Shown here: one piece after another, positions 3,001-61,293 of the stretch
How the letters are laid out: each line of letters opens with the position of its first letter
Position numbering within the stretch: the first letter of the stretch is position 1
Assembly: GCF_964194025.1 (NCBI RefSeq)
Contig: NC_134473.1
Span: forward strand, 53,072,001-53,136,000
Reading direction: 5' to 3'
Length of the DNA stretch: 64,000 nt
Origin: Convolutriloba macropyga
Taxonomy: Eukaryota
Made by a program: the position numbers and the translations under genes
Notes under the pieces: model-generated
What the model saw: the letters and a program-made list of their open reading frames with translations, nothing else
Told to the model about the DNA's origin: nothing
Databases searched by the model: none

Positions 3001-3599
3001 GCGTACGAAATAGTGATATCGCCAAATTTGGCACTCGCGCAGAACGCAACACAGATGTTTGGGAGTATGCAAAACGCCGCCCTCTCCCCTATGAAAAAAC
3101 CACGGAGGAAAAGATTTTGCAGCACACCAAAGAGCTCAAAAAGAAATTCCGTGGGGAAATCAAAATTCGTCACCACCCGACCCAATCAGACGCGGCCTCG
3201 AGAGTTTCGTCCGCTAATAGCAATATTTCAAAGGCGATGGCATCTCGAAAACCAAAAAGGCCCCACGTAGGAGGCAAACGTTCTAGAAATACTTCTGCAA
3301 CCCTCAACACATCGAATGCTTCTTCTGTTGCTGCGTCTTCAGTAACATCTTCCAACGCATCACCTTCAACGTCCCGAAATAAACGAACCCGACGCGCCCC
3401 CGACTATTTCGGTTTCGAAAGTTCTGTGTGCTCAGTTAGCGACGACTCTGCCGCCCCTGCACGTAAGAAGCAAAAGCCTGAAAATCCAGTAATCGCGACA
3501 ATAATACAAGAAGAGGCAGCTCAACCTCCTGCACCAGCGACCTATTATGAGCTCCAAGTAGTAAGTCTTCCCGCACCCCCTCCTGTTGGAACATGGTAA
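1..3599 (+). pseudogene. Gypsy pol pseudogene (reverse transcriptase, RNase H, integrase)
   Basis: RT: 'FYGLTDLPAAFQK', 'YCFLDDIIV'. RNase H: 'CDASRAGLGAAL', 'ELELLGVVWSVEYFKHYLFGKSFTIITDH', 'HIPGAKMGLVDYISR'. Integrase: HHCC 'LHLTHP...FWPYM...CKPC', DDE 'QIDFGGP/IRLDQA/GLVERLIQ', tail 'RTRRAPDYFGF'. In-frame stops at 490-492 and 859-861; frameshifts near 1360-1390 and ~1935-1945. Confidence 0.92.
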
Positions 3600-38000: not shown

Positions 38001-39518
38001 AAAGTATCCTGTAGTGAACGTAATCCAATAATATCATGAATGGTTAAAAGAGAATAATGCTAAAATTTTATTCGGCTTTTAATATTAAACCTTCGCCACA
38101 TGAGTTCAACAGCTTAAAATTGTGAAGCAGAAAGCAATTTAAATCACACAAAACTAAAAAAAAAATAATTGAATTCAAAAATAGTCCAGAAAAAAATATT
38201 TCATTAAAAAAGACACACGGCTATAATTATTGCTTCCAATTTTGTTCGAGGGCGGTTAATAAATTGGCCAATTTTTTTCAGTATTTTCCAGCCCAGTTTC
38301 TAGTTGATGTATTAAATTTTTTTTTAATAATCCAAAACCAAGAGCTGCATTAAATTACCATAATTTTCCAGCATATCCTGAATGATAAAAGTGCGTTTCG
38401 CACATAAAACAAAGCCCTTCTCTCCATGACAGATGAAAGACATGAAAGATTCAAAGCTAAAACTCCCCAAAATGGCATAAAAATGTCAGCAACACAGATC
38501 TAGAGAGCTACCCAATCTGCTGTAAAAATTGTTGACCATTATTCATTAACAAATCTGCTCAGACCGGTTCTATACAAGTACAGATTCTCAAAGAACTTGA
38601 GTTAAACTTGAATTAATTGGCCAACAATAATTTTCGTGTAATGGATTAGCTAGTTCAAGGCTTATAAAAACTATCAACAAATCAAATTCAGAAAGTAGAA
38701 ATGGTAAGAAACTTACTCAAACATGGCACGTGAAGTAGCTGACAGGTTTTCTTTGACCATTTTTCTCTAATTAATTGGTGAACTTTTCAAGTTGCCGTGA
38801 AGACTCGCCCTGAGCAAAGTTGTAGTGTTAACAAACAAGATAAATCTGAAACAGATCAACTGCGATCTAAGTAACTTCGTTTGCTATTCGTCCTTTCTAG
38901 TTTGTGACCGATAAATGAAAACCCTCAAGCCAATGAAGATTTCAAGATAGTTCACTTCTATTAATCTTGAACTTGAAGTCCAAGCTGCAAAATAGATTAG
39001 GCAAAGCAATCAAAATAATCGGTGGTTGCAGGTCGATACTGAAAAGAGAATAAAAGCTAAATTCTATCTATCTACTCAAGCACCACAGAACAGAACAAAT
39101 TCACAAATGCAAAGCAAAACGCATTAGGAAATACAACGCACGAAACGTTTCTTTCAGAAGCAAAACGCAAAAGACGTTCTATATTTACCATTCATATATT
39201 CACGTTCATATTCATGAGAATAATCACTTTATTCAGGCATGGTAGAACAGAGCCGCACATACCAAACCGTCCCTCTTGATAAAGGCTTAAGAAACGTCAC
39301 GTTTTAAGAGATTTCTGTTCACAAAGTTCAAAATGTGGAAATTGGCGAACTCTTAGCTGTTTTAGATAATACATTTCTGTTGTCGACTCTCAGCTCAGAT
39401 TTCATCAACACAAAATATTAAACTACAACTATCAGAAAATTTTTGTACTTTTATTACAGTTGGAAATTGTCAAAATTGCGGAAACGTTTCGGCATTTCAA
39501 AATTCAAATGTTAGCAGC
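35031..39518. repeat. Near-identical tandem duplication, ~2.24-kb unit (35031-37269 / 37280-39518) with a 10-bp junction insert
   Basis: ORF pair 35019..35252 and 37262..37501 (offset 2249); junction filler AAATTTCGGA at 37270-37279. Confidence 0.95.
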
Positions 39519-39628
39519 CTATTTTTAAAGATAGTCTTTGTGACAAGAACGTCGTAATTCTATTTTGATCGTACAATTTGATCACATTAGTTTCAAAAAA
39601 TTAAGATACATATACTGTCAGCTAAATT

Positions 39629-40492
39629 TCATAACAGCAAAGAATCTATTTGGGTTAAACAATCAAGCGCTCCCATTGGAAATGATAATCCGTTGATATA
39701 ACCAGGAAGTTCGGGTTCTCTCGGGTTAATTCTAATAAGACAACCCTTTTTGGTCCTGGCAGTTAACTCACTCCTTCCTCGAACTGTTGGTACGAAGTTT
39801 CCAGCACCGATTTCTATTACTACTAATTTATCATCTTGAGATATTTTGGAAAGCCATTTTTGAAACGCAAAACTTTGAGCCTCCGTACGCGTACCCACAA
39901 ATCCAAAATCGCCGAACATTAAAATATTTGGTCTTGCAAGGGAGCTGAAGTCCGCATCGGGTGGGCCTGAAGGTAGTGGAGCCTCCGCGTGCAAATCAGA
40001 ATCACGAACAACAATTTTAAAGTCATCGGGGACCGGCCAAATTTCCTCACTTTTGGATGAATCCACGAGTTGTAAAAAGTTTATGCTACCATGGCATTCA
40101 ATTACAGATTTCTCTGGGAAGCCCGCTTTCTGGAAATGTCCGTCAACATTGCTTGTAAAGACAAAGCAGCCCTTCTCTTTTCTTGCGCCCCACTTTTTGA
40201 GAATCTGGAACCCTGCGTGAGGTTCTGCTGATGAATACAACATGTAACGGTGTCCAAAAAACCCCCATGCAAAATGGGGATCATCTTCAAACCACTGCGG
40301 GTTGCTTGTATCGGGTAGCGTTAATCCGCGTTCTCTCAGAGGCGGATAGGCTTTCCAGAATCCCTCTGGTCCTCTGAAATCAGGAAGGCCAGAATCCACT
40401 GACATGCCAGCTCCAGCAGTGATTAACATAGCTTTAGAAGCTTTGATTGCTTCCGCAGCTTTAATGAAGAGCTCTTTGGAAACTGTGCTCAT
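39629..40492 (-). CDS. NAD+-dependent sirtuin (Sir2 family), non-canonical bacterial-like subfamily, 287 aa, intronless
   Basis: 'ITAGAGMSVDSGLPDFRG' NAD-binding loop, 'TSNVDGHFQKAG', catalytic 'ECHGS', 'ARPNILMFGD', 'IEIGAG', 'LIRINP'. Confidence 0.92.
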   Translation of the reverse strand: MSTVSKELFIKAAEAIKASKAMLITAGAGMSVDSGLPDFRGPEGFWKAYPPLRERGLTLPDTSNPQWFEDDPHFAWGFFGHRYMLYSSAEPHAGFQILKKWGARKEKGCFVFTSNVDGHFQKAGFPEKSVIECHGSINFLQLVDSSKSEEIWPVPDDFKIVVRDSDLHAEAPLPSGPPDADFSSLARPNILMFGDFGFVGTRTEAQSFAFQKWLSKISQDDKLVVIEIGAGNFVPTVRGRSELTARTKKGCLIRINPREPELPGYINGLSFPMGALDCLTQIDSLLL

Positions 40493-43400
40493 TGTAGTTG
40501 AGATTACATCAATTTATCTGAAACTGTGCTGAAAATTTAACAGAGTTCATACACTGTTGGGTTAGAGTAAAGTCTACTCCGCGCGCAGAAAAAATAGCCA
40601 ACTCTTTAGTCTCCTTAAGTCTTAAAAAAAGCCCATATAAGGGGTCTAACTTAACTGCGGTTGGGATAACTGGCTCACGAGTAGCTAAAATAGATAAGTA
40701 CCTCAAAGAAGGATTACCAGAAGGTAAGCTGATAAAACAAGTGCCAGGTAAACAGAAATTGGAAATTATGAGATATCTATAAATGTACTCAAGACGGCTC
40801 ACACGCAACACATAACTCTCTCCAGTGAATATGAATCCTCCTAGTCACAAGACAGTGGTAGAACTGGAACCCACAGGGCCTTACCGGTTAGACCCCGTAA
40901 CTGGAACATGGCTCACTCTATGGACTCATCCCAGCAACACAGCTCAAAATGGATTCACTGACACCTAGTTATCCTCACTCCAGGATCCATCGAATTTCAA
41001 GCAAGATTTCCTGCTGTAAGATTCCATGTACAAAATGAGTGATTCTATTCCCATTCTAATTAGCTACCACTCTCTGCCTTAAAAGATTCGGTATTAACAG
41101 TTCGCAAAGAAAACCAACCCTTCTAATCTTAGTATAGTTGCCTCGTGCAGCAAAAGCAAATATAGCTAACAGCTTGCCAGAAAATAGTTGACAATAGACT
41201 TGTAGATCTGCAGTCTCAAAAATATGAGTATTAAACACCAGAAAAAAATCACGTTCCATTGATTGCTAAGATATATTGTCATCCAGAAAGGGTACAACTT
41301 ACTGCTGTTTATATCAGCTGCACTCAAAGAACCTTCATTTAGAGTGACACTCAGTTGACCATATCTTCACATAGAGTGAGTAAAAGTCATTTTTGAAAGT
41401 GGAGAAAGACATTCTTGAGAGTCAGTTAAATCATTTGACAAAAAAAATATCGCACGAATGAACAATTTTCTCCAATGAGAGTGAAAGATGATGACAAACA
41501 AACAAAAACAAAGAAAACATCACTGAATTTCCATTTTCTTTTTACAAAAAAGTTACTCAGAGTTGAGCTCCAATACCATCCTCAAAGAGAAATAGATTAG
41601 AAAAATTTCTAAAAATTCAGCTGAATATATTGATCAGAGACAAGTATGAATTATGAAAGAGCAAATGAGACTAGTCTTTAATATGCGTCAGACAAACAAA
41701 AAGATAAACGACAAAACAGGAAAAATTCAAGAATCAGCTTAAAATTTTAAAACAAGTTTAGCTAGGGAATCAATAAAACAGTTACGTATCACTTAAACAA
41801 TGAAAGAGACTCCGATATCATTAAATAGAGAGTCAATTTGACCTGTCATTGATTAGACTAAGTGACATAACAACAAAGCAATTTAGAAAACCGCAAAACA
41901 TCAAAAATCACTCATTATTTTTAAAAGAATAAGTAGGTGACAAATTTGCTAGAAATAGTTAGAGAATAAAAACGATCGAATAGATTATAATATGGCTAAT
42001 TATGGAGCAAATCAGACCTATCATTTGCGATGTTACACGATAAACAATAAAAAATACAAAAACGAGCGATATCCAAAAAAGGAACATTTTTTGGAAACAG
42101 GTAGAAGCAAAGTCGTTAAAATATAGATTTGAAAGAACACCTTCAAATAAATTCAAATTTAACTAATTAGAGCGCGAATGAGACCTGTAATCTATGAGAA
42201 AACTGGCCGGAACAACAAAAACAACAACGCAAAGTCGAAAAGAAAAACAATATTTCCTGGAAACAGTTGGCGTCTAGGTCCTAAAACCTAAGTCTGCTTG
42301 AGGGTTTAAAAACTGCAACTTTGGATAATAGGAACACATATGCCACCTTCTGAAAACAGTCCTGCAGCAAATCAAGAGAGCAGCAGCAAAATCTAAGGTC
42401 AAATTGAGTCAAGTGAACAAAAATTTGCTCTGTAAACCAAAATACTGTTCGAACATCAAATTCACAATCCACTTTATAAGCAGATACACCCCTAACCTTT
42501 CTTCTCAAAAACAGTAACTCATTACCTCGCCGAATTTTAGTAAAAAATTTGTTAAAATTTACAACTGTCAAAGAGATTTAAGCATTGGCATCATTGGAAA
42601 AAATTAAACTATAAAAATTACGGCATCATTCAGAAACAATACAAAAAGCGGCACATATTTAAAACAAGAGATACCTTTGACTAAAAACTCACTGAAACCT
42701 TGATACCACAAAATTTCATATTAGTTAAAACATCTTGTAAAGTTGAAAAATTGCCAAAAATCATAGAATAGTCAAATGCTGATAGGCTAAAAAATGGCAG
42801 GGCCAAAAATTGTCATGAAGTAACTCATGATAGTAGTCTTAAAAAGCTAAAACTCCACAATCAATTCTTTGACCCAAGAGACACACTTTGAAAGGAGATA
42901 ATATTCTTAGATTAAATAAACTCAGTTTAGTACTTAACTGATCTAAAAAGTAGAACTCAAGAAAACACACAAAAAATTGGTTTTAGAATCACATCACTCC
43001 AGTCAAAAAAAGATATACTTCTCTGGCAGTTTTAGTTGTTGGTGATCTTCGGCAGCAATCGAATACGCAGGTGAATTGAACGCGCTGAGTTAAGGGTGGA
43101 AGCATTTGCAGAGGAAAGGGGAAGTTGGGGGAGGGGTGAAGTGGGAGGGGGTCGGAAAAGGAGGGAACAACGCTTCACACCATACAGAGATCTTATGTGG
43201 CCATAAGAACAGCCCTTCAAAGAACACAGAACAGGACAAAGAACAGCCTTTCACTCCATTAATGTTTCACCAAAGCATTTTCTGTGAACTGCGTAATTGC
43301 AAACAAAAAAATTTGAACAACCATAAAAGCAGAGCAAATAAAACTATAGGTTTAAGTAGAATGCTAGAATGATACATGCTAGAGTGTGGAGAATATGGAC

Positions 43401-44127
43401 ACATTAAACGAACAGAACATAGAAATAAACAGTACACTTCTTGATTTTTGAAAGATAAAAATCAAAATGAAAAAAAAAAAACGGATGTAAAAACGTAGCC
43501 ACGATAGACGCTTGTGGCCTTCCATGGAATTGAAACAACTGAGGAAATAATTTAGACAGATTGACAACCAGTCGTTCAATAGAACACTAGACTTTTTGGG
43601 TTAGATTCGGACTCATTTTTAAGAGACACATACATTCTATTAGGAAAAAACCATAGGAGCTTTTTCAAAATTAATATTTGAAATCAAAACTCAAGAATCT
43701 AATACTCAAGAATTAGGGCATTTAATTTTGGCAATACTTAAATGAACACTATTGATCTTCAACTAGTAAATGTTCATAAAATTTAAAGTTCCATAAATGG
43801 ATTCAGAAGTCATTTTTTTAGTGAGGTAAGTCACGCAATTGACCTAAAAGCAGAAATGACGTCACGCACACAAATTTTAACTGCAAAGCAGTAGAAGTCA
43901 CTAAAGTCATTGAAAAAGTCAATTACAAGAAGTCAGGTCGTAAGAATCATCGATGGAGACGACGAATTAAAAACAGCCAGTAGAATACCGGAAACGACTC
44001 GAATCATCGTGCATTGTAATCTATAGCCGAACCCTACCGAAATCAGAATATCAAAACAGACAAGAAAAAAAACAAAAGTAGCCCAACAAACCACCGTAAT
44101 TTTTTTTAAAATGCCGACAATTTTTTA

Positions 44128-44957
44128 GGTGTGGGGGGAGCTAGGTGGGGTGGGTGGTTAGATAGGTTGGGGAGGTAGGTGCCTACCCCCCCCCCCCCCC
44201 CCCCCCAACTTACCCCCACCTACCCCTACCCCTCCCTCCACCTAGCTACACCCCCCCCGGCCCCAACTCACCCCCTCCCCCCTACCCCGCAAACTACCCC
44301 CTCCCTTCATCTAATTACCCCCCCCCCCCCCACCTACCTTCCCCCCAACTTACAGTTTNNNNNNNNNNNNNNNNNNNNNNNNNNNNNNNNNNNNNNNNNN
44401 NNNNNNNNNNNNNNNNNNNNNNNNNNNNNNNNNNNNNNNNNNNNNNNNNNNNNNNNNNNNNNNNNNNNNNNNNNNNNNNNNNNNNNNNNNNNNNNNNNNN
44501 NNNNNNNNNNNNNNNNNNNNNNNNNNNNNNNNNNNNNNNNNNNNNNNNNNNNNNNNNNTTTGCCGACAATATTTTAGGTGTGGGGGAGCTAGGTGGGGTG
44601 GGTGGGAAGATAGGTTGGAGAGGTAGGTGCCCACCCCCTTCACCGCCCCCCCGCCCCCCCCCCCCCCCAACTACCACTACCCCCTCCCTCAACCTAGCTA
44701 CCTCCCCCCGCCCCAACTTACCCCCCTCCTCCCCCCCTACCCCGCAAACTAACCCCTCCCTTCACCTAACTACCCCCCCCCCCCCACCTACCTTCCCCCA
44801 AATTAGCCCCCCCCCACCTACCCCTACACCCTCCCTCCACCTAGCTACACCAACCTACCCTCCTCCCCCCCCCCCCCCCCCCCAACTACCTCAGCACTAC
44901 CCAACTTCCCAACCTATCTATCCACCCACAAACTTTCTACCCCCCCCCACCACCTAC
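44128..44957. repeat. C-rich low-complexity/minisatellite with a G-rich inverted arm, spanning the assembly gap
   Basis: G-rich arm 44128-44182 (repeated 44576-44630) is the approximate reverse complement of 44894-44955; the interior is CCCCACCTA-like repeats. Confidence 0.75.
44359..44558. other. Assembly gap (200 N)
   Basis: Run of N. Confidence 1.
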
Positions 44958-46584
44958 CTGTTGTTGTGCAGTGTAGTTTTGATAATTTGGGGTGACTTAT
45001 ATAGGAACAAAAATCTCAAAATGATCTCTTCACCTTGAATATTATCAGCAGTTCCTCAGTAATAAACATTACAAACGAAGCTACTGTTAAAGTCCAATGT
45101 TCGAAAACAGAAGTCAACAATCAAAAACGGAGGTAAGTACTCGAACAGAAAGAAGTCAAAATTCAAGTCATGAAAACTTGCTTACTGCTAAAAAAAACCT
45201 GTAGAATCTCAATACTACTCTTCGAGTCCTAAAAACCACGATGTCCCCAATAATAGCCGCTATCGCTTCGCGGCTATTAAAAAAACATTCAAAAAAATTC
45301 TCTGTAAAACGCTAGAAAGCAATTTCTTAGCCATTATTCAGACCAATTTTAACTGCATCTTCTGCAAGATCAGTCAGCCAACCATAACTCGGCAGAGAAC
45401 TATTAAACATTCGAAAGATACCAACATGAAAATAGCTGTGTTATAAAATATTTCAGTAAAAAGTGACATTTCTAGCTTTCAACACGTTTGATAATACTTG
45501 CTGCCATTGATCTTTAACTAAATCTTTATGCATACTATTGATCTTTAACTAGTAAATGTTCATTAAAATTAAAGTTCATTAAGTGAGCTCAGAAGTCATT
45601 TTTTTGAGTGAGTTAAGTAACGCAAGTGACCTAAAAGCAGAACAAATGACGTAACGCACACAAATTATAACTGCAAAGCAGTAGAAGTCACGAATTGAAA
45701 AAATCAATGGTCGCAAGAATCATCGATGGAGAGAGACGACGAATTAAAGAAGTCCACGATGTCACCAATAATAGCCGCTATCGCTTCGCAGCTGTTAAAC
45801 AAATACTTTTCTGGATTCAGCAATCAATGCTTAAAAAAACTGCACAACCATCCTCCTGTAGATTAAAAAAGGGAACAGATTTCAATATTCGAAACATAAA
45901 AATATTTTGAAAAAAGACAAAGCCAAAAAATAATTCAATATTAAAACGAAACTAAAATGCCTGAAAGTGCAAATAATTAAAAATTGAGAAATATGTGCCC
46001 ATTTTACACTTTGAATGCATCAAAAAGATGGTAGCTTCTCAAAAACACTGTGTTATCAATTTCAGAGGGTTACAAATTAATACGGCATGGACTATAAATT
46101 ATTTAAAAAAAACAAATTACAAAATAAACTGGGCCCATTGGACAAAAAACGGCTAAAAACGGTTATAAATATGTGCCATTTTGTCAAAAACACTTTTGAA
46201 AGTTGAAGAGTCATTCATTGAACGCATCGCTTGATCAGACTACTTCTCTAGCTCAGTTCACACGGTAATTTTACCCACTTTCTCTTTTAGGTCAAAACGT
46301 TTGAACAAATAGTACTTCTGTTAAGAAAGCCTCAATAAAACCAATAATCCCTTTCAAGTTGTATTTCGGATTGTAAAAAGACAGATCACCAATACAATCC
46401 AACCCTTGGTTATTTTCTCAGACATTCAATGAGAACAAATTCCACATTAATTTAAAGTGAAGAATGCTCTAAGTTTATTAAAAGAGTTTAGGAGCGAGGT
46501 TGATAATTCAAAACCAATTTCTCATTAAACATTTATACCGCAAATGAATTATTATCGGAGCTATTTAATATTTTTTTCATGAAT

Positions 46585-48123
46585 TCACTCAGCCCCATCT
46601 AAATTCAGATCATCCAACATTTCCGCCAGAGAAATCTTTGGATATTCTTCATCCGCATTATTCGCTCCGTCAACTTCCATTCCATCTCCGTGATCTTGCA
46701 CTCTCGATGATCCCTGCTTCTGCTTCCCTTTATCCGCATAGATATTCACTTTGCTCCTCATTACCGGATCTTCCTCCAAATCTTCTAAGAAATCGGCGTA
46801 ATCTCCGTCGTTACTGTACGACACTGAATCGCGATGATTGATTCCCAATTTTTTCAGCTTCCAGTTTCGTTCTCGGTTTCGTTTCACGCGGTTTGGGTAG
46901 ATTTTCTTCACGATAATAGCGTCTGGAATCTTATCAGCAGACATGGTCTCAAGAATCGCGTGATTGACGTTGCTGTAACGGAAGTCAAACCCCAGTACAG
47001 TATCTCCGGGTCTCAGAAGGTGTCCTAAATGAGTCCTGGTGTGTACTTGCGACAGTCCGATTTCATTTGGTCGGCTCATGTAAACATCTGCAAGCATGTG
47101 TCGGTTCGAAACGACACCACCGCTTCCAAGGTTCATTTCTGACTCGTCCACAATTTCGACCTCGATAATTACGAATTCGGTCAATTGAGTTGGCGTGCAA
47201 ATGGCCGAAAACGGCTCCCTCCAGAAAACGTTTGCCGATACCTCACCAACATGCAATGTAAATGGATCGATTAACGTAATCAGATTTGTCACGTGAATAC
47301 ATATACACAATTGAGATAAATTGCCCAAAGATTGGGCTAATTTCTTGGGAAGAGCCACTATATTTTCACGACAAACAGGAACAATTTCAATACTGAAATT
47401 GTGCTTATAATTGTACACGTTATCATGCGTATCGTGCGATTTAAGTTTCCTCGACGCTGTGTATCGACAAGGTACCACTTGCTGAACAAATTCTAGAAAC
47501 TTCCGCGCTTCCTGTTCTCGTGCAAAAAAGAAATCAACTCCACCGCTTTCGGTTTTAACATTAGTGCATAATGAATGCTGATTATATTTGAGAATTAGCT
47601 GTTCCAGGTAATAGAATGTCTTTCTATGAGTTGTTTTCTGACGAACTTGTACAACCGCTTTCCAGAAATCTTGAGCTTCAGTTCGATGACAATCATCGCA
47701 CATGTGATTTTGAATGATGAAAGTGACAACTACATTCTGTCGCAGAATTGTACCGGCTTCTATTTCTTTCTCAACCACAATTTTAACATTCACAACTTTT
47801 GAATGCGGCTCAGTCCACAGAAACGAAGCGTCCACGAGTCGAAGACTTTTCTTCAAACCTTTGATTCGCTTCAGGCAAATTCCCAATAACTGCTTTGATT
47901 CCAAATCTGCGGTTATCCATTGATTAGGTGGTTGAAGTACGCGAGAGCATTTCTGACAAACTTCAAGTGTGTTGCTAGTTGAGATTTCATCGACGATATT
48001 AGCTTGCACTTTGATGCAATTTACACACATGTTGGCTGCGTTCGGTTGAATTGGAGTCGAACATTGGCAGCATAAAATGACCACATTCTCTGAAGGTCCG
48101 AATATCGCTGAATCGGTGTCCAT
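46585..48123 (-). CDS. NMD3: 60S ribosomal subunit export adaptor NMD3, 512 aa, intronless CDS
   Basis: N-terminal Cys pairs 'CCQC...PNAANMCVNC...CQKC', 'LVDASFLWTEPHSK', 'CDDCHRTEAQDFWKAVVQVRQK', 'HTRTHLGHLL', 'DFLEDLEED', C-terminal NES 'LAEMLDDLNL'. Confidence 0.97.
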   Translation of the reverse strand: MDTDSAIFGPSENVVILCCQCSTPIQPNAANMCVNCIKVQANIVDEISTSNTLEVCQKCSRVLQPPNQWITADLESKQLLGICLKRIKGLKKSLRLVDASFLWTEPHSKVVNVKIVVEKEIEAGTILRQNVVVTFIIQNHMCDDCHRTEAQDFWKAVVQVRQKTTHRKTFYYLEQLILKYNQHSLCTNVKTESGGVDFFFAREQEARKFLEFVQQVVPCRYTASRKLKSHDTHDNVYNYKHNFSIEIVPVCRENIVALPKKLAQSLGNLSQLCICIHVTNLITLIDPFTLHVGEVSANVFWREPFSAICTPTQLTEFVIIEVEIVDESEMNLGSGGVVSNRHMLADVYMSRPNEIGLSQVHTRTHLGHLLRPGDTVLGFDFRYSNVNHAILETMSADKIPDAIIVKKIYPNRVKRNRERNWKLKKLGINHRDSVSYSNDGDYADFLEDLEEDPVMRSKVNIYADKGKQKQGSSRVQDHGDGMEVDGANNADEEYPKISLAEMLDDLNLDGAE

Positions 48124-48193
48124 GGCTCTGAAATTTGATAACAGAACTTTCCAATAATTTCAGTGACGATAAAAAACAGCAATTACCTAAAAA

Positions 48194-48652
48194 CATAACC
48201 GACTAGCGTCGGGCGAATTGCTCTCAAACGACCTGCGAGCGGTTGGCTTCTTCAGTAGCTAGCCACGGTTTAGTGAGGCTAGCTTAAGATTAATTGAAGG
48301 GGCGTAAGTTGAGCGCAGCGGGGGTGCACCGCAGCGGGGGTGCACCACAGCGGGCGTGCAAAAGTGGATTGGGGGACTAATGTGGGGGCGGTGGGTGGGG
48401 TGTGGGATCAATTTCTAAGAACCGCCCTTAACACCATAAATCTCTGTTCAGCTTCTGTTCATCGCATACTTGAAAACTAGTGGGCTGAACAGCTCTAAGA
48501 GAACTTAATGCAAACAGGGAGCTACCGCTTTATCCCGTTTCTGAAGACGAAGGTCGATTGGGTCCGACAAAAAATCGGCCAGGCGAAAAACTGCATAAAA
48601 GAGACAAACCGGATTAATATATTTGCTACAAATTGCTTTTGAGAGCAATTAA
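48194..48652 (-). mobile_element. Complete ~460-bp HINE, family C type copy
   Basis: Hairpin CCGAC-TAGC-GTCGG (48199-48212); perfect 13-bp subTIRs AATTGCTCTCAAA (48216-48228) / TTTGAGAGCAATT (48638-48650). Related copies at ~33140-33455 and ~51560-51830; isolated ends at 13404 and 16852. Confidence 0.78.
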
Positions 48653-50814
48653 CAACGATTTCCTAAAAAGTGCCTGTTAAGTCATTTAAGATAAAAAACA
48701 TTTCTAGTATAACCTATTGTTAATGAGAATCAGAGATGATGACAATACGCCACATAACAGCAGCTGAAGTGCGGCATCAACAAAGAGAGAGAGAGAGAGA
48801 AAGAGAGAGATAAAACGTGAACGAGAAAGAGGGAAAGAAACCCTAACCGACAGAGAGAGAAAGAGATACGAATATTTTCCATGATGGAATTCGACTCCGC
48901 AATTTCTAATTTTTTTTCAAATTTCGCAGTAAAAAAATTTAAAACCATTTTTTGTCAAGAAAGTTTTAACAAGTAACCCATCTCCGAGACTTAAAACGTT
49001 GGCCAGTAATGGTCGTAACTCAGAAAAGGACAAAAAATATTGAAAAATTGAATCTATTCTTCTTTGCCCCCGCTTAGTGAGCATAAACTTTTTTATGACA
49101 CCCAGGCACACGTGCTAATTTCTTAAATAGTAACGAGCTATATAACAACATATAATTTGTAACAGCGGGTCATAAAAATATTGCGGGGCCGAAACAGAAT
49201 TTTTAGATCCAAATAATTTTGAAAAAGGCAAATTTTAACAAAATCTTGCTAAAATTCAAGAAACTAAGAACTTAAGAACCATTCCATTGTCTCAAGAGAC
49301 CATCCAATATCCCTGTTGCAAGCCTGAAATAGTTTCACTGGCTCATAAAGATCCACACACTTGGAACATGATAAATTTCCAAAAACTTTAAACAAATTTT
49401 ATCAAAAAATTTCTAAAACTGGAGTAATTAAAACATTGATAACCATTTCAATAACTCTCCAAAAACTGATCCAAAAACTATGCAGCAGCTTATCAAACCT
49501 CGGAGGAGGTCCCAGGGCCCCTGGTGCCGGAAAAAATCAAAAAGAAAAAAGGGCAAATATTTTAAAAAAATTGCTTAAAATCATGATATCAAAATCTTGA
49601 AGAACACTCCATTGCATCTATAAATCAAGCAGTAACATATTATCAAACACTAGAGGAAGTTCTGTAGCGAAACCTAAAAATTAACAAAGTTTCAATAAAC
49701 TTAAAAATTGCAGATTTTATTAAAAAAAATTGCTAAAACTTGTAATATTAAAAGGTTGAAAATTAATCCATGACCAACAAAAATTTCCCATTAACTTACT
49801 ATCAAACCCTAATTGAGATTTTCTATCCCTTGAGGGTAGAAAAACTTGAGTAATGACTGTCAAAAAATTGGAAAAAAAAATGACAAAAACTGTCAAAAAA
49901 TGCTAAAATTCCTGATGTTAAAATGTTGCAAGACATTCCATTACATCTAGAAATTATACAGTAACCTATTTTCAACACCTAGAGGAGGTTCTTTGGCTCT
50001 TGAGGATGAAAAAACCAAAAAAAAACAACAAAAAACCAACAATACTGCAAGAAATGACCAAAAATTGTTATTTCTCTCAATCGAAACATTATTTTACAAA
50101 ATAAAAACAGTAATCAATGGGCAGCAACATTTTCCTTGCTTTAACTATAAACATTAGTTATCGCTTTAAATCACAATAAGAGCAATAAAACTAAACAATG
50201 ACCAACAAATAAATAAAAATTAATCGAGAAAAAGAAAAAAGACAGAATATTCAAACGCAAAATTCGTAGGTTACTAAAACCAAACCCTAGGAAAATTTGC
50301 AGAAAAAGAATTCTTCAGAAATTGTAAAAGTGAAGCTAGCAAAACCCAGTGCCATATGTTAAATAAAATCAATTGCAAACAAAAAACTTTAAAAAATTCA
50401 AAGGAAAAAGACAAAAATCATTAGTTATTTTCGATAATTTTCAATTTAATTAAGGCAGGGCGAATAAACTATAGGATTTAGGAGAAGTCTAGCAAGAAAC
50501 ACGCTAGAATGTACAGAATACATACATTGTGGAAAAAATTGAAAAACTATCTCGCAATCGCCGAAAAATCAAAAAACTAAATTACGAACTCTAATTTAAC
50601 AAATAAAAAAAGGTAAAAAATACATGGACATTTTGCAATTAAGCATTTGAAGTTTCAGAACAATACATAGCCATCTTCATGTCTAAGTAATTTTTGAAAA
50701 CGTCTCAATTGCGAAACAGTAAAACCATTCGAAAAAAAATGTTCAAAAAATAGTAAAATTTTTTACTCGATTTTAAAGAGTTACCGCCAGAAACAATTCA
50801 ATTAGCCACAAAAA

Positions 50815-51315
50815 CATAGCTCGCAGATTGCCAGAAAATAGCCGCAATAGATTCGTAGATCGGCAGTCTAAAAAAAACAGTAAAAAAGACAGACCAAAAA
50901 AATCGTCTTCTCATTGAAGGCTGATCTGTTATATTTTGATTAAAAGTCTGTATAAGTTATTGCTGCCTCTATTAGCTGATCTCAAATAACCTTCATCTAG
51001 AGTGACACACTCCCATTTGACCATATCTCTTTGAATTAAAGTAAATAAAAGTCAATTTCAAAGTGAGGAAGTCATTTTTGTGAGTGAGGTAAGTCAAGTG
51101 TGACCAAAAATTTAATCACGCGCATGAACAAAAAAAAACTCGCTCCACTAAGAGCGAAAAATGACGTCACATGCAATTCAGTTGAAATTGCATGAACGAA
51201 TGAACAAAAAGTGGCTGTGACGTCATATGGTCGTAACAAAAATCATGACGACGAAATAAAAAAAAACCAAGAGAAGGCCAATAATAGCCCCAGCTATCGC
51301 TGTGCGGCTATTAAA
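50815..51315 (-). mobile_element. ~500-bp HINE, family A variant with a different body
   Basis: CATAGCTCGCAGATTGCCAGAAAATAGCCGCA ... AATAGCCCCAGCTATCGCTGTGCGGCTATTAAAA; body shared with ~21440-21850 and ~41170-41490. Confidence 0.68.
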
Positions 51316-52080: not shown

Positions 52081-55000
52081 TCAGCAGCCTGTAGGTTTTG
52101 CGAAATATCCAAATCCCTTCTTATTAATCTGAGACTTTAGCACCACTGGTTCTGAAATGCCTTTTCCCTCGCTCCCCAGACCTCCTCCTGGCGTCCAGCC
52201 CATGTTCAGTAGCATCTTATGTCCAACATTGGACTCCGGTAGCACCCTTTCTGAGGGTTCCGGGCACTCTCTGAACCCCGAAAGCCTACTACTAGTCGGC
52301 CGGTTTTTCAATTCGCCCGAATAACTCCGTCGTCTTTTCTTCTTGTGCTTTGAGGAATAGTAAAATTTTGCGTAACGTTGCCTGGATGAACCGTTGCCAA
52401 CAATAGAATATCGACTACGTTTGCTCTTTGAGCTTCCGTCTGGGGAGGTAAGATGCTCATATGACTCTGAAGAATTATCGCGAGAATCCAAAACCTCCGT
52501 TGTACTAGGTAAAGCCCTTTTACAAATCCCGGGATGGAAGGTTCCCAGCGCTGCCGATGACTGCAAAAAGGCATTGACGGAATCGTGACTGGTGACGGCT
52601 TTAATTCCTTCCAATATTTGGTTCAGCTTGGCGTCGAACTCTGGTCGGTGGGTCACTTCTGATATTTCGCCTTCTTCCCACCACGGAACAGCACAGGGCA
52701 AGCCGCAAACACTTCTAGTTTCATCGTTTTCTGAGAGCTCATCGTCTCCTTCGCGACCTTCGTCAGCTATAAATCAACTACAATTCAAACTGTAGACTCA
52801 AATTAGAATTGAAACAAATAAGTAAATTCAAGTTCAACAAATTGCTCTCAACCAATGGTACAGACGATAGAGTTATAAATTTTCCTCCCTGCCACTTTGC
52901 GTGAATTAGACTAATAGACTCCCTATTGTCACCCAAACTTTCGAATGAAGACAGTAAGTATCAATTGAATAGCTTTCAAATTGAGTAGCGAGGCTACATT
53001 TGTCCCATTGTAGCAGTATTTTGCACTCAGCCACAAAAAAACTTGATTAACCAACAGCGAAATAACCAACAGTTCCTATATAAGTGCATCAAAATTTAAG
53101 AGCATTTGACAAAATTTTTAAGTATTCTGTACAATTTTGTTTCAGCAGAGGAAATCCAAGACTAACAACCGAAAATTCAACTCATTGAGATGTGCCTTAA
53201 AAACAAATTATTCCATTTTTTCCGCTGAAATTCAGTTTAATCTTGAGATAAACCGCTGTTGGGCCAACTGATTTATTTTTATTGTTCACATGGTTGATAA
53301 CCACAATATTTGCATAATTAAAATTACAAGGCTGAAAAATTCATTTTCCTTGCGTTATTTGTCAGCTTTAACACGATAAAAAAATTAAGAGAAGGCAATC
53401 TGATGTCCCTAGTATTGTCGCAAGTTTAGACGTAATATTTTTTTGCAGAACATATGTGAAATCACTAATTCCAGTTCCATGATGAATTCCATACGCATAG
53501 TACAGACGCGCAGAATGTAATATATTCCAGAAAAACTGACACTATACCAGCCTTAAAAAAGGATTTTTGGTCTTTTCAAGAAGACAATGTTATAAGCTAG
53601 TTTTCAGTGAGGTGTACCAGTAGAATCAGTTAGATATCCAATCGACAGAGCTTTTCTGGATGGACCAAAAGAAAAAGGTAGCATTAAAAGCCTCAAAGTT
53701 AATCAACTCAGTTTTACAACTGCGAGTGTACAAACACTTTTCATGCGTACACAATGACGACTGAAATAATGCTCAAAACATCAAACTATTAATTAGTATC
53801 CATCTAGTGATACAGAGATCTAACCCAACACGTCCTTGACGTGTTTTTTGCCGGCTTATGTACACTTGAGAATTGATTAAAGCATTTTAAAAATTGAAAC
53901 GTAGTTGTAACAAGATTTTTAAAGTAAGATTCATTCTGTCCTTTATTTTGAGTTTTCATTTTTCAGCAAAACCTGTCGCCTACATATTAGCAAAGATAAT
54001 CCCGGTAGAGCTCATGAGATAAAAACAATATAAGATATTGCGATGAGTTCACAAAAATTTAATAATTAAATCTCAGAATTTGTTTCTATTCTCAGAGCTT
54101 TTGGGGGGAACCAAACAATTAATTAAAAGCTAGATCTTAGATTCATCATTACTGATTTTAAAGCGAAAATTTTTGCGTGCCCCGGAAAGACCTGATGGCC
54201 AAATTTTTAACTTCATAGCTGATAAAACCATATATCATTCTTTCAGCTCACAGCCATCAATGAAATACTTAATGAAAGCATCTGTTTTTTTTCGTTTCTC
54301 AGACGAAACTGCCGATATGTAATTATCTTTTCAAGAACACAAAAGGATACTTAATTAAATTGTGACAAAGTTTAAAAAGGCAGCGCTGGAAATTTATATA
54401 CATATCCAGCAGATCGCCGGAATATGGCTGCCGTTGATTCCCACAATCCGACTGGGATTGGAAAACATACCCGGCAGATTGCCGGAAAATAGCCTCCGAT
54501 GATTCCCATAATAAAGATTGCGATTGAAAGAAAAAACTAGTGAAACAACGATTTTTGTACAAACAATTTTAAAGTACGAACTAGTATCAATATCAATAAG
54601 CATTAAATATGGTAACTAAGAACAAAGTTTCAGTACCGGGCATCTAAAATTGCGTTTTATGTGTTCATCCCGTTTCTATTTCTGATTTCATTTTTTGATA
54701 TTGACTCTGTTCAATTTGAATCGCTTTGCTAGGCAACTGCTGTCTAAAAACACTTTCAACAGAAAGAAAGAAGAGTAAAACTAGCCTGGAGAATTCAAAA
54801 AGACTTCACGCAAAATGTTGAACAAGCTGTGATCTAAGGTAAAGCAAAAAAATTTTTATTCGACGAAGTGAAAAACATAGCAGTACAAGTCCTGACGTAC
54901 AATTTAAAGAATTTTCATTGACTAAACAAAAAAATAGACCTAGAACCGACTTTGAGTGAATTGGGAAAACCATATTTAAAAAAAAATTGATAAAACAAAA

Positions 55001-58000: not shown

Positions 58001-61000
58001 AAGTCAAATTGCCGCATGTGAAGAAAACCACAAACGAGAAAGCGATTTTTTTAATCAAACGCCGTATTCTGACTCTGCTTTGAGATTGGAGTGAAAAAAA
58101 TTAACAGAGCAAAACCACTCGCTTTTTTGCTCCACTTCCTGTTTGACTTCTCCGTTTTGACTTCAAAATCACTTTTCCAATTCGACTTCAAAAATCATGT
58201 AAAGGATTATTCTGAAGGCATGTAAACTTTAACCTTTCGGTTATATTATTAATTTACATGTTTGGAAAAAAAAGAAAAGAAAGACACCGCCCCCAATAAA
58301 AATCAAATTCTTTGATTTGTAAAAATAAAATGGGAGCGAATAGCCAGCTGAAAAGATGATAGCTGCTTATAAAAATAAAAATTTTGTTTTTGCGTAATCG
58401 CAGAGGAGCAGCGGTAGGCTTTAAGTCAGCAGTGTATTAATCGCACCCTGTTTTCAGCTGTCTTTTTCTAATATTCCCCACATTTCACTTTTCATTTAGT
58501 GAGCAAGAACGCTCTTTTTGTTGACTATGGCCACTTCTGTTCGTCTGAAACTTAAACGTGGTACAATTATTGCAGGAATATTGGTCAGGCTATGGTCAAC
58601 CTGAAGCTATGCCCTAGTCAATATCCGATGGTTATCTTGTAAAAAAAGCTTCCATCTTGCAAGACCTTACAAGACGATGGTTACCTTGCAAGATCTTACA
58701 TGACGATGGCTATAATGGAAGATCTTGCAAGACTAAAGCCTATCTTTAACGATTCTTGCATTTTCGTTCCAGTCGAGCTCTACTGTCATTGATGCATTAT
58801 TGTTTCAATTATTTTTTTAAAAATTATTTCATATTTTTAATTCGCGCAGAATAAAAAACAAAATTGATGCCATATTGGTTGTAAACCTTTAGTGTAATCA
58901 GAAAAATAACGTATCGTCTCATTCTAATCATTTTCCATCATGTTCCATTTATTTGCATATTTGCAAGATGAATAGCTCTCTTGCAAAATCTTGCGGAACA
59001 AAATTATGCAACACGATGTATCTCAATGCAAGATTCTGCCAGAATCTTGCAAGATAACAATTCGAAGCCGACAAAACGAATTCCACGACCATAATTCCCA
59101 ATTTTCAATAGGGGAAACGAACTTCACATACGAATGAGCGCTGATTTGTACAAATCTTGCGTAAAAATCAAATCTTTCTTAAAAGTTAAGCATATTGCTC
59201 ACCCCTGAGATAAATGGGCACTCTATGATTCGAAGTAGCAAAATAATTTTTCAATTCAAGCTGTTCACTTAACAGCAATAAAATTTTTATGGGTGAAAAT
59301 CGGGTAAACCAATATCAAAATCAATGATCGTCATGAAACACGATTTCAAATTTCGACGAAGCTCGAGAAAAGCGAAGCAAGGTGTCAACTACAAGCAGGA
59401 ACTAATTTTTTCAGGCGAACACAAAGTCCAATTGGCCAAGATGATCTGCCAAGTCAATCTACGCCAATCAGTTCTATCTGCTATGCTCATTACGAAATTG
59501 GAACATTGCGTTCGTTGTATCACGAAAACAGCTAATTTTCCACCCCAATCACCGATTATGAATACTTCATAAACAAATCAGTTTTAAAACCAATGAGAAG
59601 ACTGATAATTTAAAAGGTTCACTTACGTTTCTCTGAAACAATTAACATAAAACTAACACACACACACACACACAAAAACTTTTGTTTAAGTAATTTGACA
59701 AAAATCGCTCCCCATTTCTATTCGAATGTCGTATGAGCGAAAGAAGTCACGATTAAATCATAAAGCACGGAGAAAAGCTTAAGTATAAAGCATTACAAAA
59801 TCTAGAAGCGTTAGTATACCAATGGCCGTACCTGTAAAAATACCCGTGGCAGCTTCATCCTGACTGGGTGAAGAAGTATCTATTGAGCTCTCATTACTGT
59901 CACTGTTTCCAAACACGTCATCTCTTTTGTCGATTGTCTGAACATCGCTAATCTGAGCAGTGTCTTCAGTGCACACAACTTCGTCTCCATCCGAGGCAGG
60001 TTTGGATATTGCCGAAATGTTAGAAATATTCAAAATTTTCGAACTGCTAGTTTGATGTTCTATGTCCGACATTACCAACGGGTTGCTCAAACTGCTCGTA
60101 TTTAGTGTTCCTGATTGTTGACCTTCAATTGTATTCGAGCTCTGGCCGTCAAATTCCATAGTTTGATTGCTAGAGTCATCGTGGTTTATAACTGAAGTGC
60201 TGAAGTTATAGTCCGACGAGAACTTAAATGGGATGTTCTTCCACGGACTCTTTCTAGCGCTAGTGTTAGCCGACACATTGAGCGCCAAATCACTATTACG
60301 CAGATTGTCGCTGGATGGTTTACTTCTTGTCAGAGTCCCATTCCCATTTTCTCGTTCAACTTCAGGCACAGGGTAACTAATTACCTCCAAGCTGCTTTTC
60401 GAAGCACCTGTGCCTTTACGTCGATTTGTTTCTTGAGCAACAATTTCCAAGTCATTAGCATCAATTGGCGACGCCATGTCAATTGCCATTTTCTTCATCC
60501 GGCGTTTGTGTCTTCTTTGAGGTTTCTGAGATTTTGTTGCCGCTGGGTTATCGGTGAAGGAGTCGCTTTCAATTGGTACGGTGACCGCTAAAACAAAAAA
60601 TAATTTTGATACAGCAACAAAAAAACTGTGGCTACTTTCTTCAAATAAAACCTTACCTAATTGCTTAAATCTTCGATATATGTCAATGTGGTCCTTGACA
60701 GAAATTCCGCATTTATGCAATCCGCCTTGAAATTCAGCCAAATTCCTAGCAAAACGCATTTTTTGACAATCAATCATTGATCTCTGCGTTGTGCTAGCTA
60801 CATTCTGTTTCACTTGAGCTGAATACTGTGTTGAGCTTGAAGCTTCCGACGCAGTCGTCGTAACTTTGTTCGTAGGTTTTTGAGTGCAGACATTGTTTTG
60901 GTGATGATTGTTAGTTGCGCAATGAGATGTTTCGCTATTGCACGAATTGCTAACAACTGAGAGCGGGTTCGAGTTTCCACTTGTTGTGTCCCAGCTAGAA

Positions 61001-61293
61001 GCTGGCTCATATTCAGATCCTCCGGCACTGTCTTGTCTTTTGAACAATGTTCCGTTACTCCCACTAGCTGGGTCGAGTTCGCAATTACGACAGCTTTCAT
61101 CATATGGTGGAGAAAATGGGATCGGAGGAGACCCATTAGTTTGAGCTCCCGTTGCGTCTTGGGCTAAGTCTTCAATTGCATCTCTTTTCTTTCTCCTTCG
61201 CCGTCTTATGGACATTCCTGCTGCTATGAACTCTCCGCCACTGGTAACTGCATTACCGCCAGCAGATGCAGTGTTATTTGCATTTTCATCCAT
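52081..61293 (-). CDS. GPATCH2: G-patch domain-containing protein 2; join(complement 61293..60657, 60587..59832, 52766..52081), ~692 aa
   Basis: Phase-1 junction ACA G|GTACGG ... TTTATAG|CT gives 'GIFTADEGREGDDELSE...CGLPCAVPWWE', resembling the conserved GPATCH2 motif (GLFTNDEGRQGDDE...VVPWWE). C-terminal G-patch 'ESNVGHKMLLNMGWTPGGGLGSEGKGISEPV...KKGFG'. Confidence 0.88.
54401..58375 (-). repeat. Head-to-tail tandem array of ~1.0-kb HINE units in GPATCH2 intron 2
   Basis: Period ~1004 (ORF ends 55440 vs 56444). Element 5'-termini at ~55428-55475, 56432-56480, 57431-57478 and ~58332-58375; hairpin 3'-termini only at 54401-54430 and 54466-54495. Confidence 0.85.
58607..59113. repeat. MITE-like segment with many TCTTGCAAGA palindromes
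   Basis: Repeated (A)TCTTGCAAGA(T) and variants at ~58635-58760 and ~58960-59055; possible CCCTA...TAGGG ends. Confidence 0.5.

Follow-up and report, generated by a model that had tools for sequence, protein, structure and literature searches.

A sirtuin gene without the zinc-binding cysteines in Convolutriloba macropyga belongs to an overlooked animal family

We analysed a stretch of 64,000 nucleotides from the genome of Convolutriloba macropyga (assembly GCF_964194025.1, contig NC_134473.1, positions 53,072,001 to 53,136,000 of the forward strand; this whole stretch is called the window) and examined a sirtuin gene at window positions 39629-40492. The encoded protein keeps the nicotinamide adenine dinucleotide (NAD)-binding and catalytic residues of sirtuins, and it has none of the four cysteines that bind the structural zinc. 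We find that the gene is not an oddity of the window's genome. It is a member of an overlooked, unnamed animal sirtuin family, and the loss of the zinc site is an old, shared character of an uncharacterised invertebrate clade of this family, not a peculiarity of the locus. We read the gene as a functional, vertically inherited animal gene whose product is most likely a zinc-independent NAD+-dependent lysine deacylase. Judging from the sequence comparisons and a predicted structure, we put the probability of this reading at about 0.78.

Results

An intact sirtuin gene with a complete catalytic site

The list of open reading frames (ORFs) shows an intact frame of 287 codons, from ATG to stop, on the minus strand. 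Its product matches the Pfam family SIR2 (PF02146) with an E-value of 1.8e-16 and 61 bits, against a cut-off of 24. One ORF covers the full length of the bacterial and animal homologues; the gene is thus a single exon, as a preliminary description of this DNA had proposed when it called the gene intronless. The features of the gene are listed here.

39629..40492, minus strand: complete single-exon coding sequence of a 287-amino-acid sirtuin (ATG at 40492-40490, TGA at 39631-39629)
40370..40414, minus strand: NAD-binding loop GAGMSVDSGLPDFRG, residues 27-41
40247..40258, minus strand: FGHR, residues 79-82, where class III sirtuins have the acyl-recognition motif Y-x-x-R, with Phe replacing Tyr
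40139..40156, minus strand: TSNVDG, residues 113-118, counterpart of the canonical TQN-x-D motif
40085..40099, minus strand: ECHGS, residues 132-136, with the catalytic His134
39935..40084, minus strand: remodelled small-domain module, residues 137-186, in place of the zinc ribbon
39956..39967, minus strand: GPPD turn, residues 176-179, replacing the second Cys-Pro-x-Cys knuckle and followed by an insertion of 2-3 residues
39800..39814, minus strand: EIGAG, residues 227-231, counterpart of the canonical G-T/S-S NAD-binding loop

Aligning the protein with its bacterial and animal relatives (121 rows), we find that the NAD-binding loop is conserved: G35, P37, D38 and G41 never vary, and near-invariant residues are G27, A28, G29, S34, F39 and R40. 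S114, N115 and D117 of the TSNVDG motif are invariant, and so are E132, H134 and G135 of ECHGS, which aligns with the catalytic HG of Af1 Sir2 and CobB. In the EIGAG loop, G229 is invariant, and E227, A230 and G231 are nearly invariant. The NAD-binding and catalytic set as a whole (the GAG of the loop, S34, F39, R40, N115, D117, H134, G229-A-G231 and N256) is therefore invariant or nearly so, and the earlier statement that these motifs are intact holds. The peptide-binding FGD motif and its strand are also retained, and a Pro-rich stretch, YPPLxxRGLTLP, is inserted after the NAD loop. The conserved residues are those for NAD+ binding, nicotinamide release and His-assisted deacylation, which is why we favour a lysine deacylase.

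The FGHR motif aligns with YNAR of Escherichia coli CobB and with YGHR of the bacterial relatives. Residue 79 is Phe in 94% of the rows of the zinc-less clade described below and Tyr in 93% of the bacteria. This exchange suggests that the acyl preference has shifted relative to the bacterial relatives, and hints that succinyl-type acyl groups may be recognised more weakly than in them.

A proline-rich turn stands in place of the zinc knuckle

The canonical structural-zinc signature, Cys-x2-4-Cys ... Cys-x2-Cys, is absent from the small domain of the window protein. The segment from HGS to RPNI (residues 137-186) reads INFLQLVDSSKSEEIW...APLPSGPPDADFSSLA and contains no cysteine; the only cysteines of the protein are at positions 109, 133, 251 and 278. 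In the alignments with E. coli CobB and the bacterial members, the window protein has L142, the S146/K147 region, G176 and D179 in the zinc-cysteine columns. The alignment of the zinc region thus confirms what had been noticed at the outset, namely that all four zinc cysteines are gone.

Checking the same columns across the family, we find all four cysteines (Q-C-x3-4-C and C-P-x-C; Cys4 in the following) in 72 of the 121 members, which are bacteria and Sycon-type sponge sequences. In the other 49 the second pair is missing, and a turn of the form LPxGPP(G/D) is found instead, which reads LPSGPPD in the window. Within the zinc-less clade, the turn has G176 in 94%, P177 in 100% and P178 in 87% of members, followed by G or D at 179. 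The same place in bacteria is occupied by C (100%), P (86%), any residue and C (100%). The first cysteine is still present in 55% of the zinc-less members; in the window gene and its closest relatives it is Leu. The clade also has fixed extras: Pro155, a small insertion at residue 146, and the 2-3 residue insertion after GPP(G/D). The module as a whole stayed conserved, with a mean top-residue frequency of 0.58 in the zinc-less clade versus 0.63 in bacteria.

We read the course of events as follows. One animal branch, comprising cnidarians and bilaterians, swapped the second Cys-Pro-x-Cys knuckle for a rigid Gly-Pro-Pro-Gly/Asp turn. The same branch gained the small insertions and stopped conserving the first Cys pair, and the small domain would now be held by the proline-rich turn in place of zinc. 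Because the module stayed conserved and the same beta-ribbon shape is predicted for it, the structural role of zinc has probably been taken over by the peptide itself.

Zinc cysteines were also lost separately in bacteria. Such sporadic losses are seen at the loci L038, L075 and L024 and in the sequence P0082. The loci belong to metagenome-assembled genomes (MAGs), one of Bacteroidetes, one of Verrucomicrobia subdivision 3, and one of Bradymonadaceae, which is without the last Cys only. As bacterial members lost these cysteines independently, the family seems to tolerate the loss of the zinc site unusually well.

The zinc-less sequences form one animal clade

With a word-index search we retrieved more than 8000 relatives of the window protein. 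The closest match, 99% identical, is an allele carried by an ENA contig of 257 kb, and the next ones are 73%, 70%, 65% and 62% identical. The contig with the 70% orthologue, from Logan (L089), was inspected for a poly(A) tail or leader and looks genomic. Named animals with members at 53-59% identity are Lineus longissimus, Lingula anatina, Hydractinia symbiolongicarpus, Sycon ciliatum and Paralvinella palmiformis. A member of the jellyfish Sanderia malayensis, found via EukProt, lies in the same range. The distribution among animals is patchy and concerns marine invertebrates.

Bacterial proteins are 46-54% identical to the window protein. Searching one genome per prokaryotic species with the patterns [FY]TSNVDG[HQ]F and AWGF[YF]GH, we detected the gene in at least 595 bacterial species, at 46-53% identity. 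They belong to Planctomycetota, Verrucomicrobiota, Acidobacteriota, Myxococcota and Actinomycetota, and further to Campylobacterota, Aquificota, Chlorobiota, Bacteroidota and Gammaproteobacteria. The marks of the family are TSNVDG, AWGF(Y/F)GHR and the G-A-G nucleotide loop, and the window protein carries them all. TSN is present in 80 of 83 bacterial ORFs; the signatures TSN and GAG, which the preliminary description had likened to a subfamily mainly of bacteria and microbial eukaryotes, are family-wide and mainly bacterial. We also clustered the ORFs flanking 80 bacterial loci, as clusters and not by scanning each ORF against Pfam. No neighbour occurred in more than 6 of these loci, and no operon clue emerged.

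Performing maximum-likelihood analysis with E. coli CobB as the root, we recovered a group of 51 rows (SH-aLRT 99), made up of 3 Sycon-type Cys4 rows and 48 zinc-less rows. The 48 zinc-less rows are one clade (support 91), sister to the Sycon-type sequences, and the 49th, P0082, falls among bacteria. The window sequence falls within the clade of 48 rows, with P0002-P0004 as its nearest neighbours (support 99), and the named animals represented in this clade are Hydractinia, Sanderia, Lineus, Lingula and Paralvinella. To check whether the module columns alone draw the zinc-less rows together, we dropped these columns. The split between bacteria and animals was still supported (92), and the order within the animal group was not resolved. 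On this reduced alignment, a single clade of the 48 rows was not rejected by an approximately unbiased test (p 0.964), and the constrained tree was 74 log-likelihood units above a quick free search.

The cysteine loss is not special to this gene or genome. A grouping with a widespread animal clade already without these cysteines had been named beforehand as refuting the preliminary interpretation. This grouping is what we found: the loss is common to 48 sequences, including those of cnidarians, a nemertean, a brachiopod, an annelid and the nearest relatives of the window gene, and it is a single shared loss.

The sirtuin gene resides in animal genomes

The window sirtuin is a true animal gene. 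Two neighbours on the same strand carry this point.

46585..48123, minus strand: intronless NMD3 gene, 512 amino acids (Pfam NMD3, NMD3_OB and NMD_SH3)
52081..52701, minus strand: ORF with a G-patch domain (Pfam G-patch, E-value 4.7e-15)

NMD3 is a eukaryote-only ribosome export adaptor, and it is part of a conserved gene order: G-patch, NMD3 and SIR2 have the same order and orientation in a relative with 73% protein identity (L007/L008). The surrounding DNA has 36% GC, and a methyltransferase ORF and an integrase-bearing element are also nearby. The sirtuin ORF has a GC content of 0.446, and 0.378 at third codon positions (GC3), compared with 0.424 and 0.419 for NMD3. Among the repeats around the sirtuin gene, none marks it as transposon cargo.

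The loci of other animals point the same way. The Hydractinia gene is 3.2 kb long, with three exons and two spliceosomal introns, and lies on a 37-Mb chromosome. A tandem paralogue shares its exon structure, with 48-80% identity per exon (L003:6001-14244); this two-gene block was reported at two places of one chromosome (L003 and L004). In Lineus the copy is without introns; it lies on a 29-Mb chromosome, and the genes on its two sides, for WD40 and enoyl-CoA hydratase, do contain introns. A 98-Mb chromosome of Sycon bears two copies in tandem, both intronless (L005:6001-10931). The Lineus protein (L006:6001-7140) has an N-terminal extension of about 90 residues, which is without counterpart in other members and may represent a targeting peptide or result from faulty annotation.

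The conserved gene order, the host-like composition and the Hydractinia introns together exclude a recent transfer or contamination. The preliminary description had suggested that the gene was possibly horizontally acquired or patchily retained. Patchy it is, and the same three observations speak against recent acquisition; an ancient transfer into early animals is possible.

The gene is under purifying selection

We compared the window with the second haplotype (L001). The two differ at 15 of the 864 coding positions, without any indel; 12 of the codon changes are synonymous and 3 are replacements (I160M, A205V and C251F). The flanks show 1-3% substitutions and many indels between the haplotypes. 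The ratio of nonsynonymous to synonymous substitution rates (dN/dS) is 0.07-0.09 between the haplotypes and 0.04-0.06 against the 73% orthologue, the latter with saturated dS. The frame is intact in both, and the ORF is thus not a product of chance. All four heterozygous sites inside the ORF in the public runs are at third codon positions (4/4). The sirtuin gene is under purifying selection, as had been supposed from the open frame.

The haplotypes are 99.97% identical over 44559-50918, on the NMD3 side, versus 95.7% over the adjacent 7 kb that bear the sirtuin. The shift in divergence is sharp and falls at an assembly gap (44359-44558). A C-rich, low-complexity degenerate repeat of CCCCxACCT-like units at 44178-44358 abuts this gap of N letters.

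The predicted fold and the known sirtuin classes

The structure prediction that had been proposed earlier gave a two-domain sirtuin fold. The AlphaFold model, made with the family alignment, has a pLDDT of 96.4 and a pTM of 0.92, with pLDDT values of 95-98 across the zinc-less module. A model of the Cys4 homologue P0054 from Planctomycetota reached equal confidence, and the short strands of its module follow each other in the same order. Aligning the predicted model with solved structures by VIA-align, we obtained Z-scores of 21-26 to more than 50 sirtuins, with about 240-269 residues aligned; none is a close solved structure. The main matches are listed.

SirTM (8rsn_A, 5a3a): Z 25.7, 260-269 residues, identity 18-20%
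SIRT5: Z 24.2, 250 residues, identity about 21%
Af1 Sir2: Z 23.5, 239 residues, identity about 25%

Searching the solved structures with the family profile, we obtained 90 bits for Af1, 85 for the Fusarium SirTM domain and 84 for SIRT5. In a single-sequence search, the Fusarium SirTM domain was the only solved chain aligned over most of the protein. The best NCBIfam models are NF001753, which is CobB-like (94 bits against a cut-off of 243), and NF040867 (77 against 320); none reaches its cut-off. By profile and predicted fold, the family appears to sit between class III (CobB, SIRT5, Af1) and class M.

With class III the family shares the catalytic His, the NAD loops and the Arg at the Y-x-x-R position, and class III models give its best NCBIfam scores and its best profile match to a solved structure (Af1). 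The bacterial members have the full class III motif, as Y-G-H-R, whereas in the window it is incomplete (F79-G-H-R82), with the Arg kept. In contrast, the identity of class III proteins to the window protein is only 20-27%, with Z-scores of 23.5-24.2 at a root-mean-square deviation of 2.5 A. Class III proteins also have TQN and GTS where the family has TSN and GAG, and the zinc cysteines are missing from the animal branch.

Class M (SirTM of Streptococcus pyogenes and Staphylococcus aureus, and Fusarium Mfs1) gives the highest Z-scores and the longest structural alignment. It also resembles the family in its G-x-G-x-x-x-P nucleotide loop and mainly microbial distribution. However, class M has Gln-Gly in place of the catalytic His-Gly, is linked or fused to a zinc macrodomain, and keeps the structural zinc (PMC4518038, PMC11490716). 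The present family retains His-Gly and has no macrodomain partner. The defence-type or non-canonical SIR2 proteins (ThsA, DSR, SIR2-HerA and FAM118A/B) resemble the window protein in lacking zinc-binding cysteines, as described for the FAM118 sirtuins (PMC12700824). They belong to the SIR2_2-like branch and are NADases, often forming filaments or fused to sensors, whereas the window protein keeps the canonical small domain. Searching the window protein against the PADLOC defence-system models, we found no match at E 0.01.

Weighing of alternative explanations

The preliminary description had considered a switch in activity to NADase or ADP-ribosyltransferase, and this idea is left without support. 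SirTM is a pure ADP-ribosyltransferase (PMC4518038, PMC11490716), and a protein of this chemistry that has lost deacylation would agree with the two best structural matches (8rsn_A and 5a3a), with the Fusarium domain being the sole solved chain found by the single-sequence search, and with the likeness of the G-A-G-x-x-V-P-T loop to the GVGx[NT]TP motif of class M (PMC4518038). But the Z-scores of SIRT5 and Af1 are within about 2 of that of SirTM, and His134-Gly is invariant family-wide where class M has Gln-Gly. The neighbours also fail to fit: no recurrent partner stands beside the bacterial genes, and those in the window are NMD3, G-patch and retroelement ORFs. The catalytic His and the lack of a macrodomain led us to reject membership in class M, and we regard such a switch in chemistry as unlikely. 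An NAD+-degrading immune or defence NADase of the ThsA, DSR, SIR2-HerA or FAM118 type would account for the absent cysteines and is less likely still. The Pfam match is to SIR2 PF02146 and not to SIR2_2, the full small domain and the FGD motif are kept, and no sensor or effector domain is fused. The bacterial members have no conserved partner of the kind expected in a defence island, and the nearest structures are all deacylases or SirTM. A defence-type SIR2 was rejected, there being no PADLOC match.

A metal might still be bound through other ligands, such as the relic first Cys, Asp or His, so that the protein would not be zinc-free. The retention of the first cysteine in over half of the zinc-less members and the frequent Asp at residues 144 and 179 would allow this. 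But in the window protein the four positions are occupied by Leu, Ser/Lys, Gly and Asp, of which no more than one could be a ligand; no side chains are available from the Gly-Pro-Pro turn, and the closest relatives all have Leu at the place of the first Cys. We give this explanation very little weight. Least credible of all is a bacterial contaminant or a recent horizontal transfer that drifts unused by the animal. It could appeal to the mostly bacterial occurrence of the family, to the intronless window gene, to the want of an RNA run, and to Gold and Sinclair (2022), who regarded a similar group of animal sequences as probable contamination. Against it, the sirtuin sits between eukaryote-only genes and retroelements in DNA of 36% GC with host-like GC3, within a gene order conserved at 73% identity. 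The second haplotype is in frame with a low dN/dS, and the animal sequences form one group (support 99), in which the Hydractinia copy has two spliceosomal introns. Contamination and recent transfer are refuted by gene order, composition and the Hydractinia introns.

Several points weigh against a zinc-independent deacylase in active use. In the studied sirtuins, mutation of the zinc cysteines abolishes activity, and a compensating change has to be assumed here. AlphaFold omits metals and may be confident from co-variation alone, so the zinc-free fold is a prediction. The literature that we searched holds no biochemical data on members of the family, bacterial or animal. Our search for public runs returned four DNA-like runs of one study, whose contigs span genes and spacers equally, and no RNA run. 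Most zinc-less rows come from ENA, Logan or JGI and only six belong to named animals, and the root and the sister position of the Sycon-type sequences depend on one very long outgroup, E. coli CobB. Finally, from 39518 rightwards the contig k-mer depth in all four DNA-like runs is reduced to about 55%, and it remains low to about 43000, across the sirtuin gene. One contig of these runs joins 39444 to 43458 with TTTC between. These observations could reflect an allele without this 4-kb segment or a repeat insertion that is polymorphic and lies 185 nt downstream of the stop codon, or else a spurious short match.

Other features of the window

The k-mer depth exceeds 10,000 in all public runs at 41146-41539 and 43313-43500; these two segments are very high-copy repeats that flank the gene region. 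Two candidate signals near the gene were read from the sequence.

40518..40535, minus strand: two ...CAG sites, both pyrimidine-rich, at 26 and 37 nt upstream of the ATG
39450..39455, minus strand: AATAAA, 174 nt downstream of the stop codon

The CAG sites are possibly splice or trans-splice acceptors, and stop codons separate both from the ATG. The AATAAA is a possible polyadenylation signal. Farther away, a 551-codon ORF at 1944-3599 has a weak match to an integrase core (rve) and probably belongs to a retroelement or DNA transposon. The ORFs at 59779-61293 (504 amino acids) and 1367-2029 have no Pfam match.

Discussion

The settled view has been that sirtuins need structural zinc to be catalytically competent. 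In the literature searched, we found no paper on a zinc-less sirtuin with an intact deacylase site, and on the present animal clade we found only an exclusion. Gold and Sinclair (2022) noticed animal sirtuins outside the named families whose best hits were microbial, and excluded these as probable contamination; the genera in Table S2 of that work are Aurelia, Clytia, Capitella, Leucosolenia, Sycon, Strongylocentrotus and Salpingoeca. After discarding that clade they counted at least nine sirtuin families in early animals. Their clade resembles the present family in including a scyphozoan, a hydrozoan, an annelid and calcareous sponges, Sycon ciliatum among them. The two are likened here by taxa and description, not by sequence, and theirs was read as contamination. 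The present family, at least, is truly animal, because its loci are chromosome-level, carry introns and keep a conserved gene order.

We tentatively propose, at a little under even odds, a wider history. The family would go back to a very early animal ancestor, which inherited it or acquired it from bacteria, and it was previously set aside as contamination. In its cnidarian-bilaterian branch it would be the first known lineage of sirtuins to fold and work without structural zinc while keeping the deacylase site complete, and it would later have been lost from vertebrates and the classical model invertebrates.

For the window alone the meaning is modest, since its gene is an ordinary member of the clade; the point worth a bench test lies at the level of the family. 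The finding bears on how many families of sirtuins existed in early animals. With the Cys4 sponge and bacterial relatives as matched controls, the zinc-less clade would offer a natural test of whether the metal of sirtuins is dispensable.

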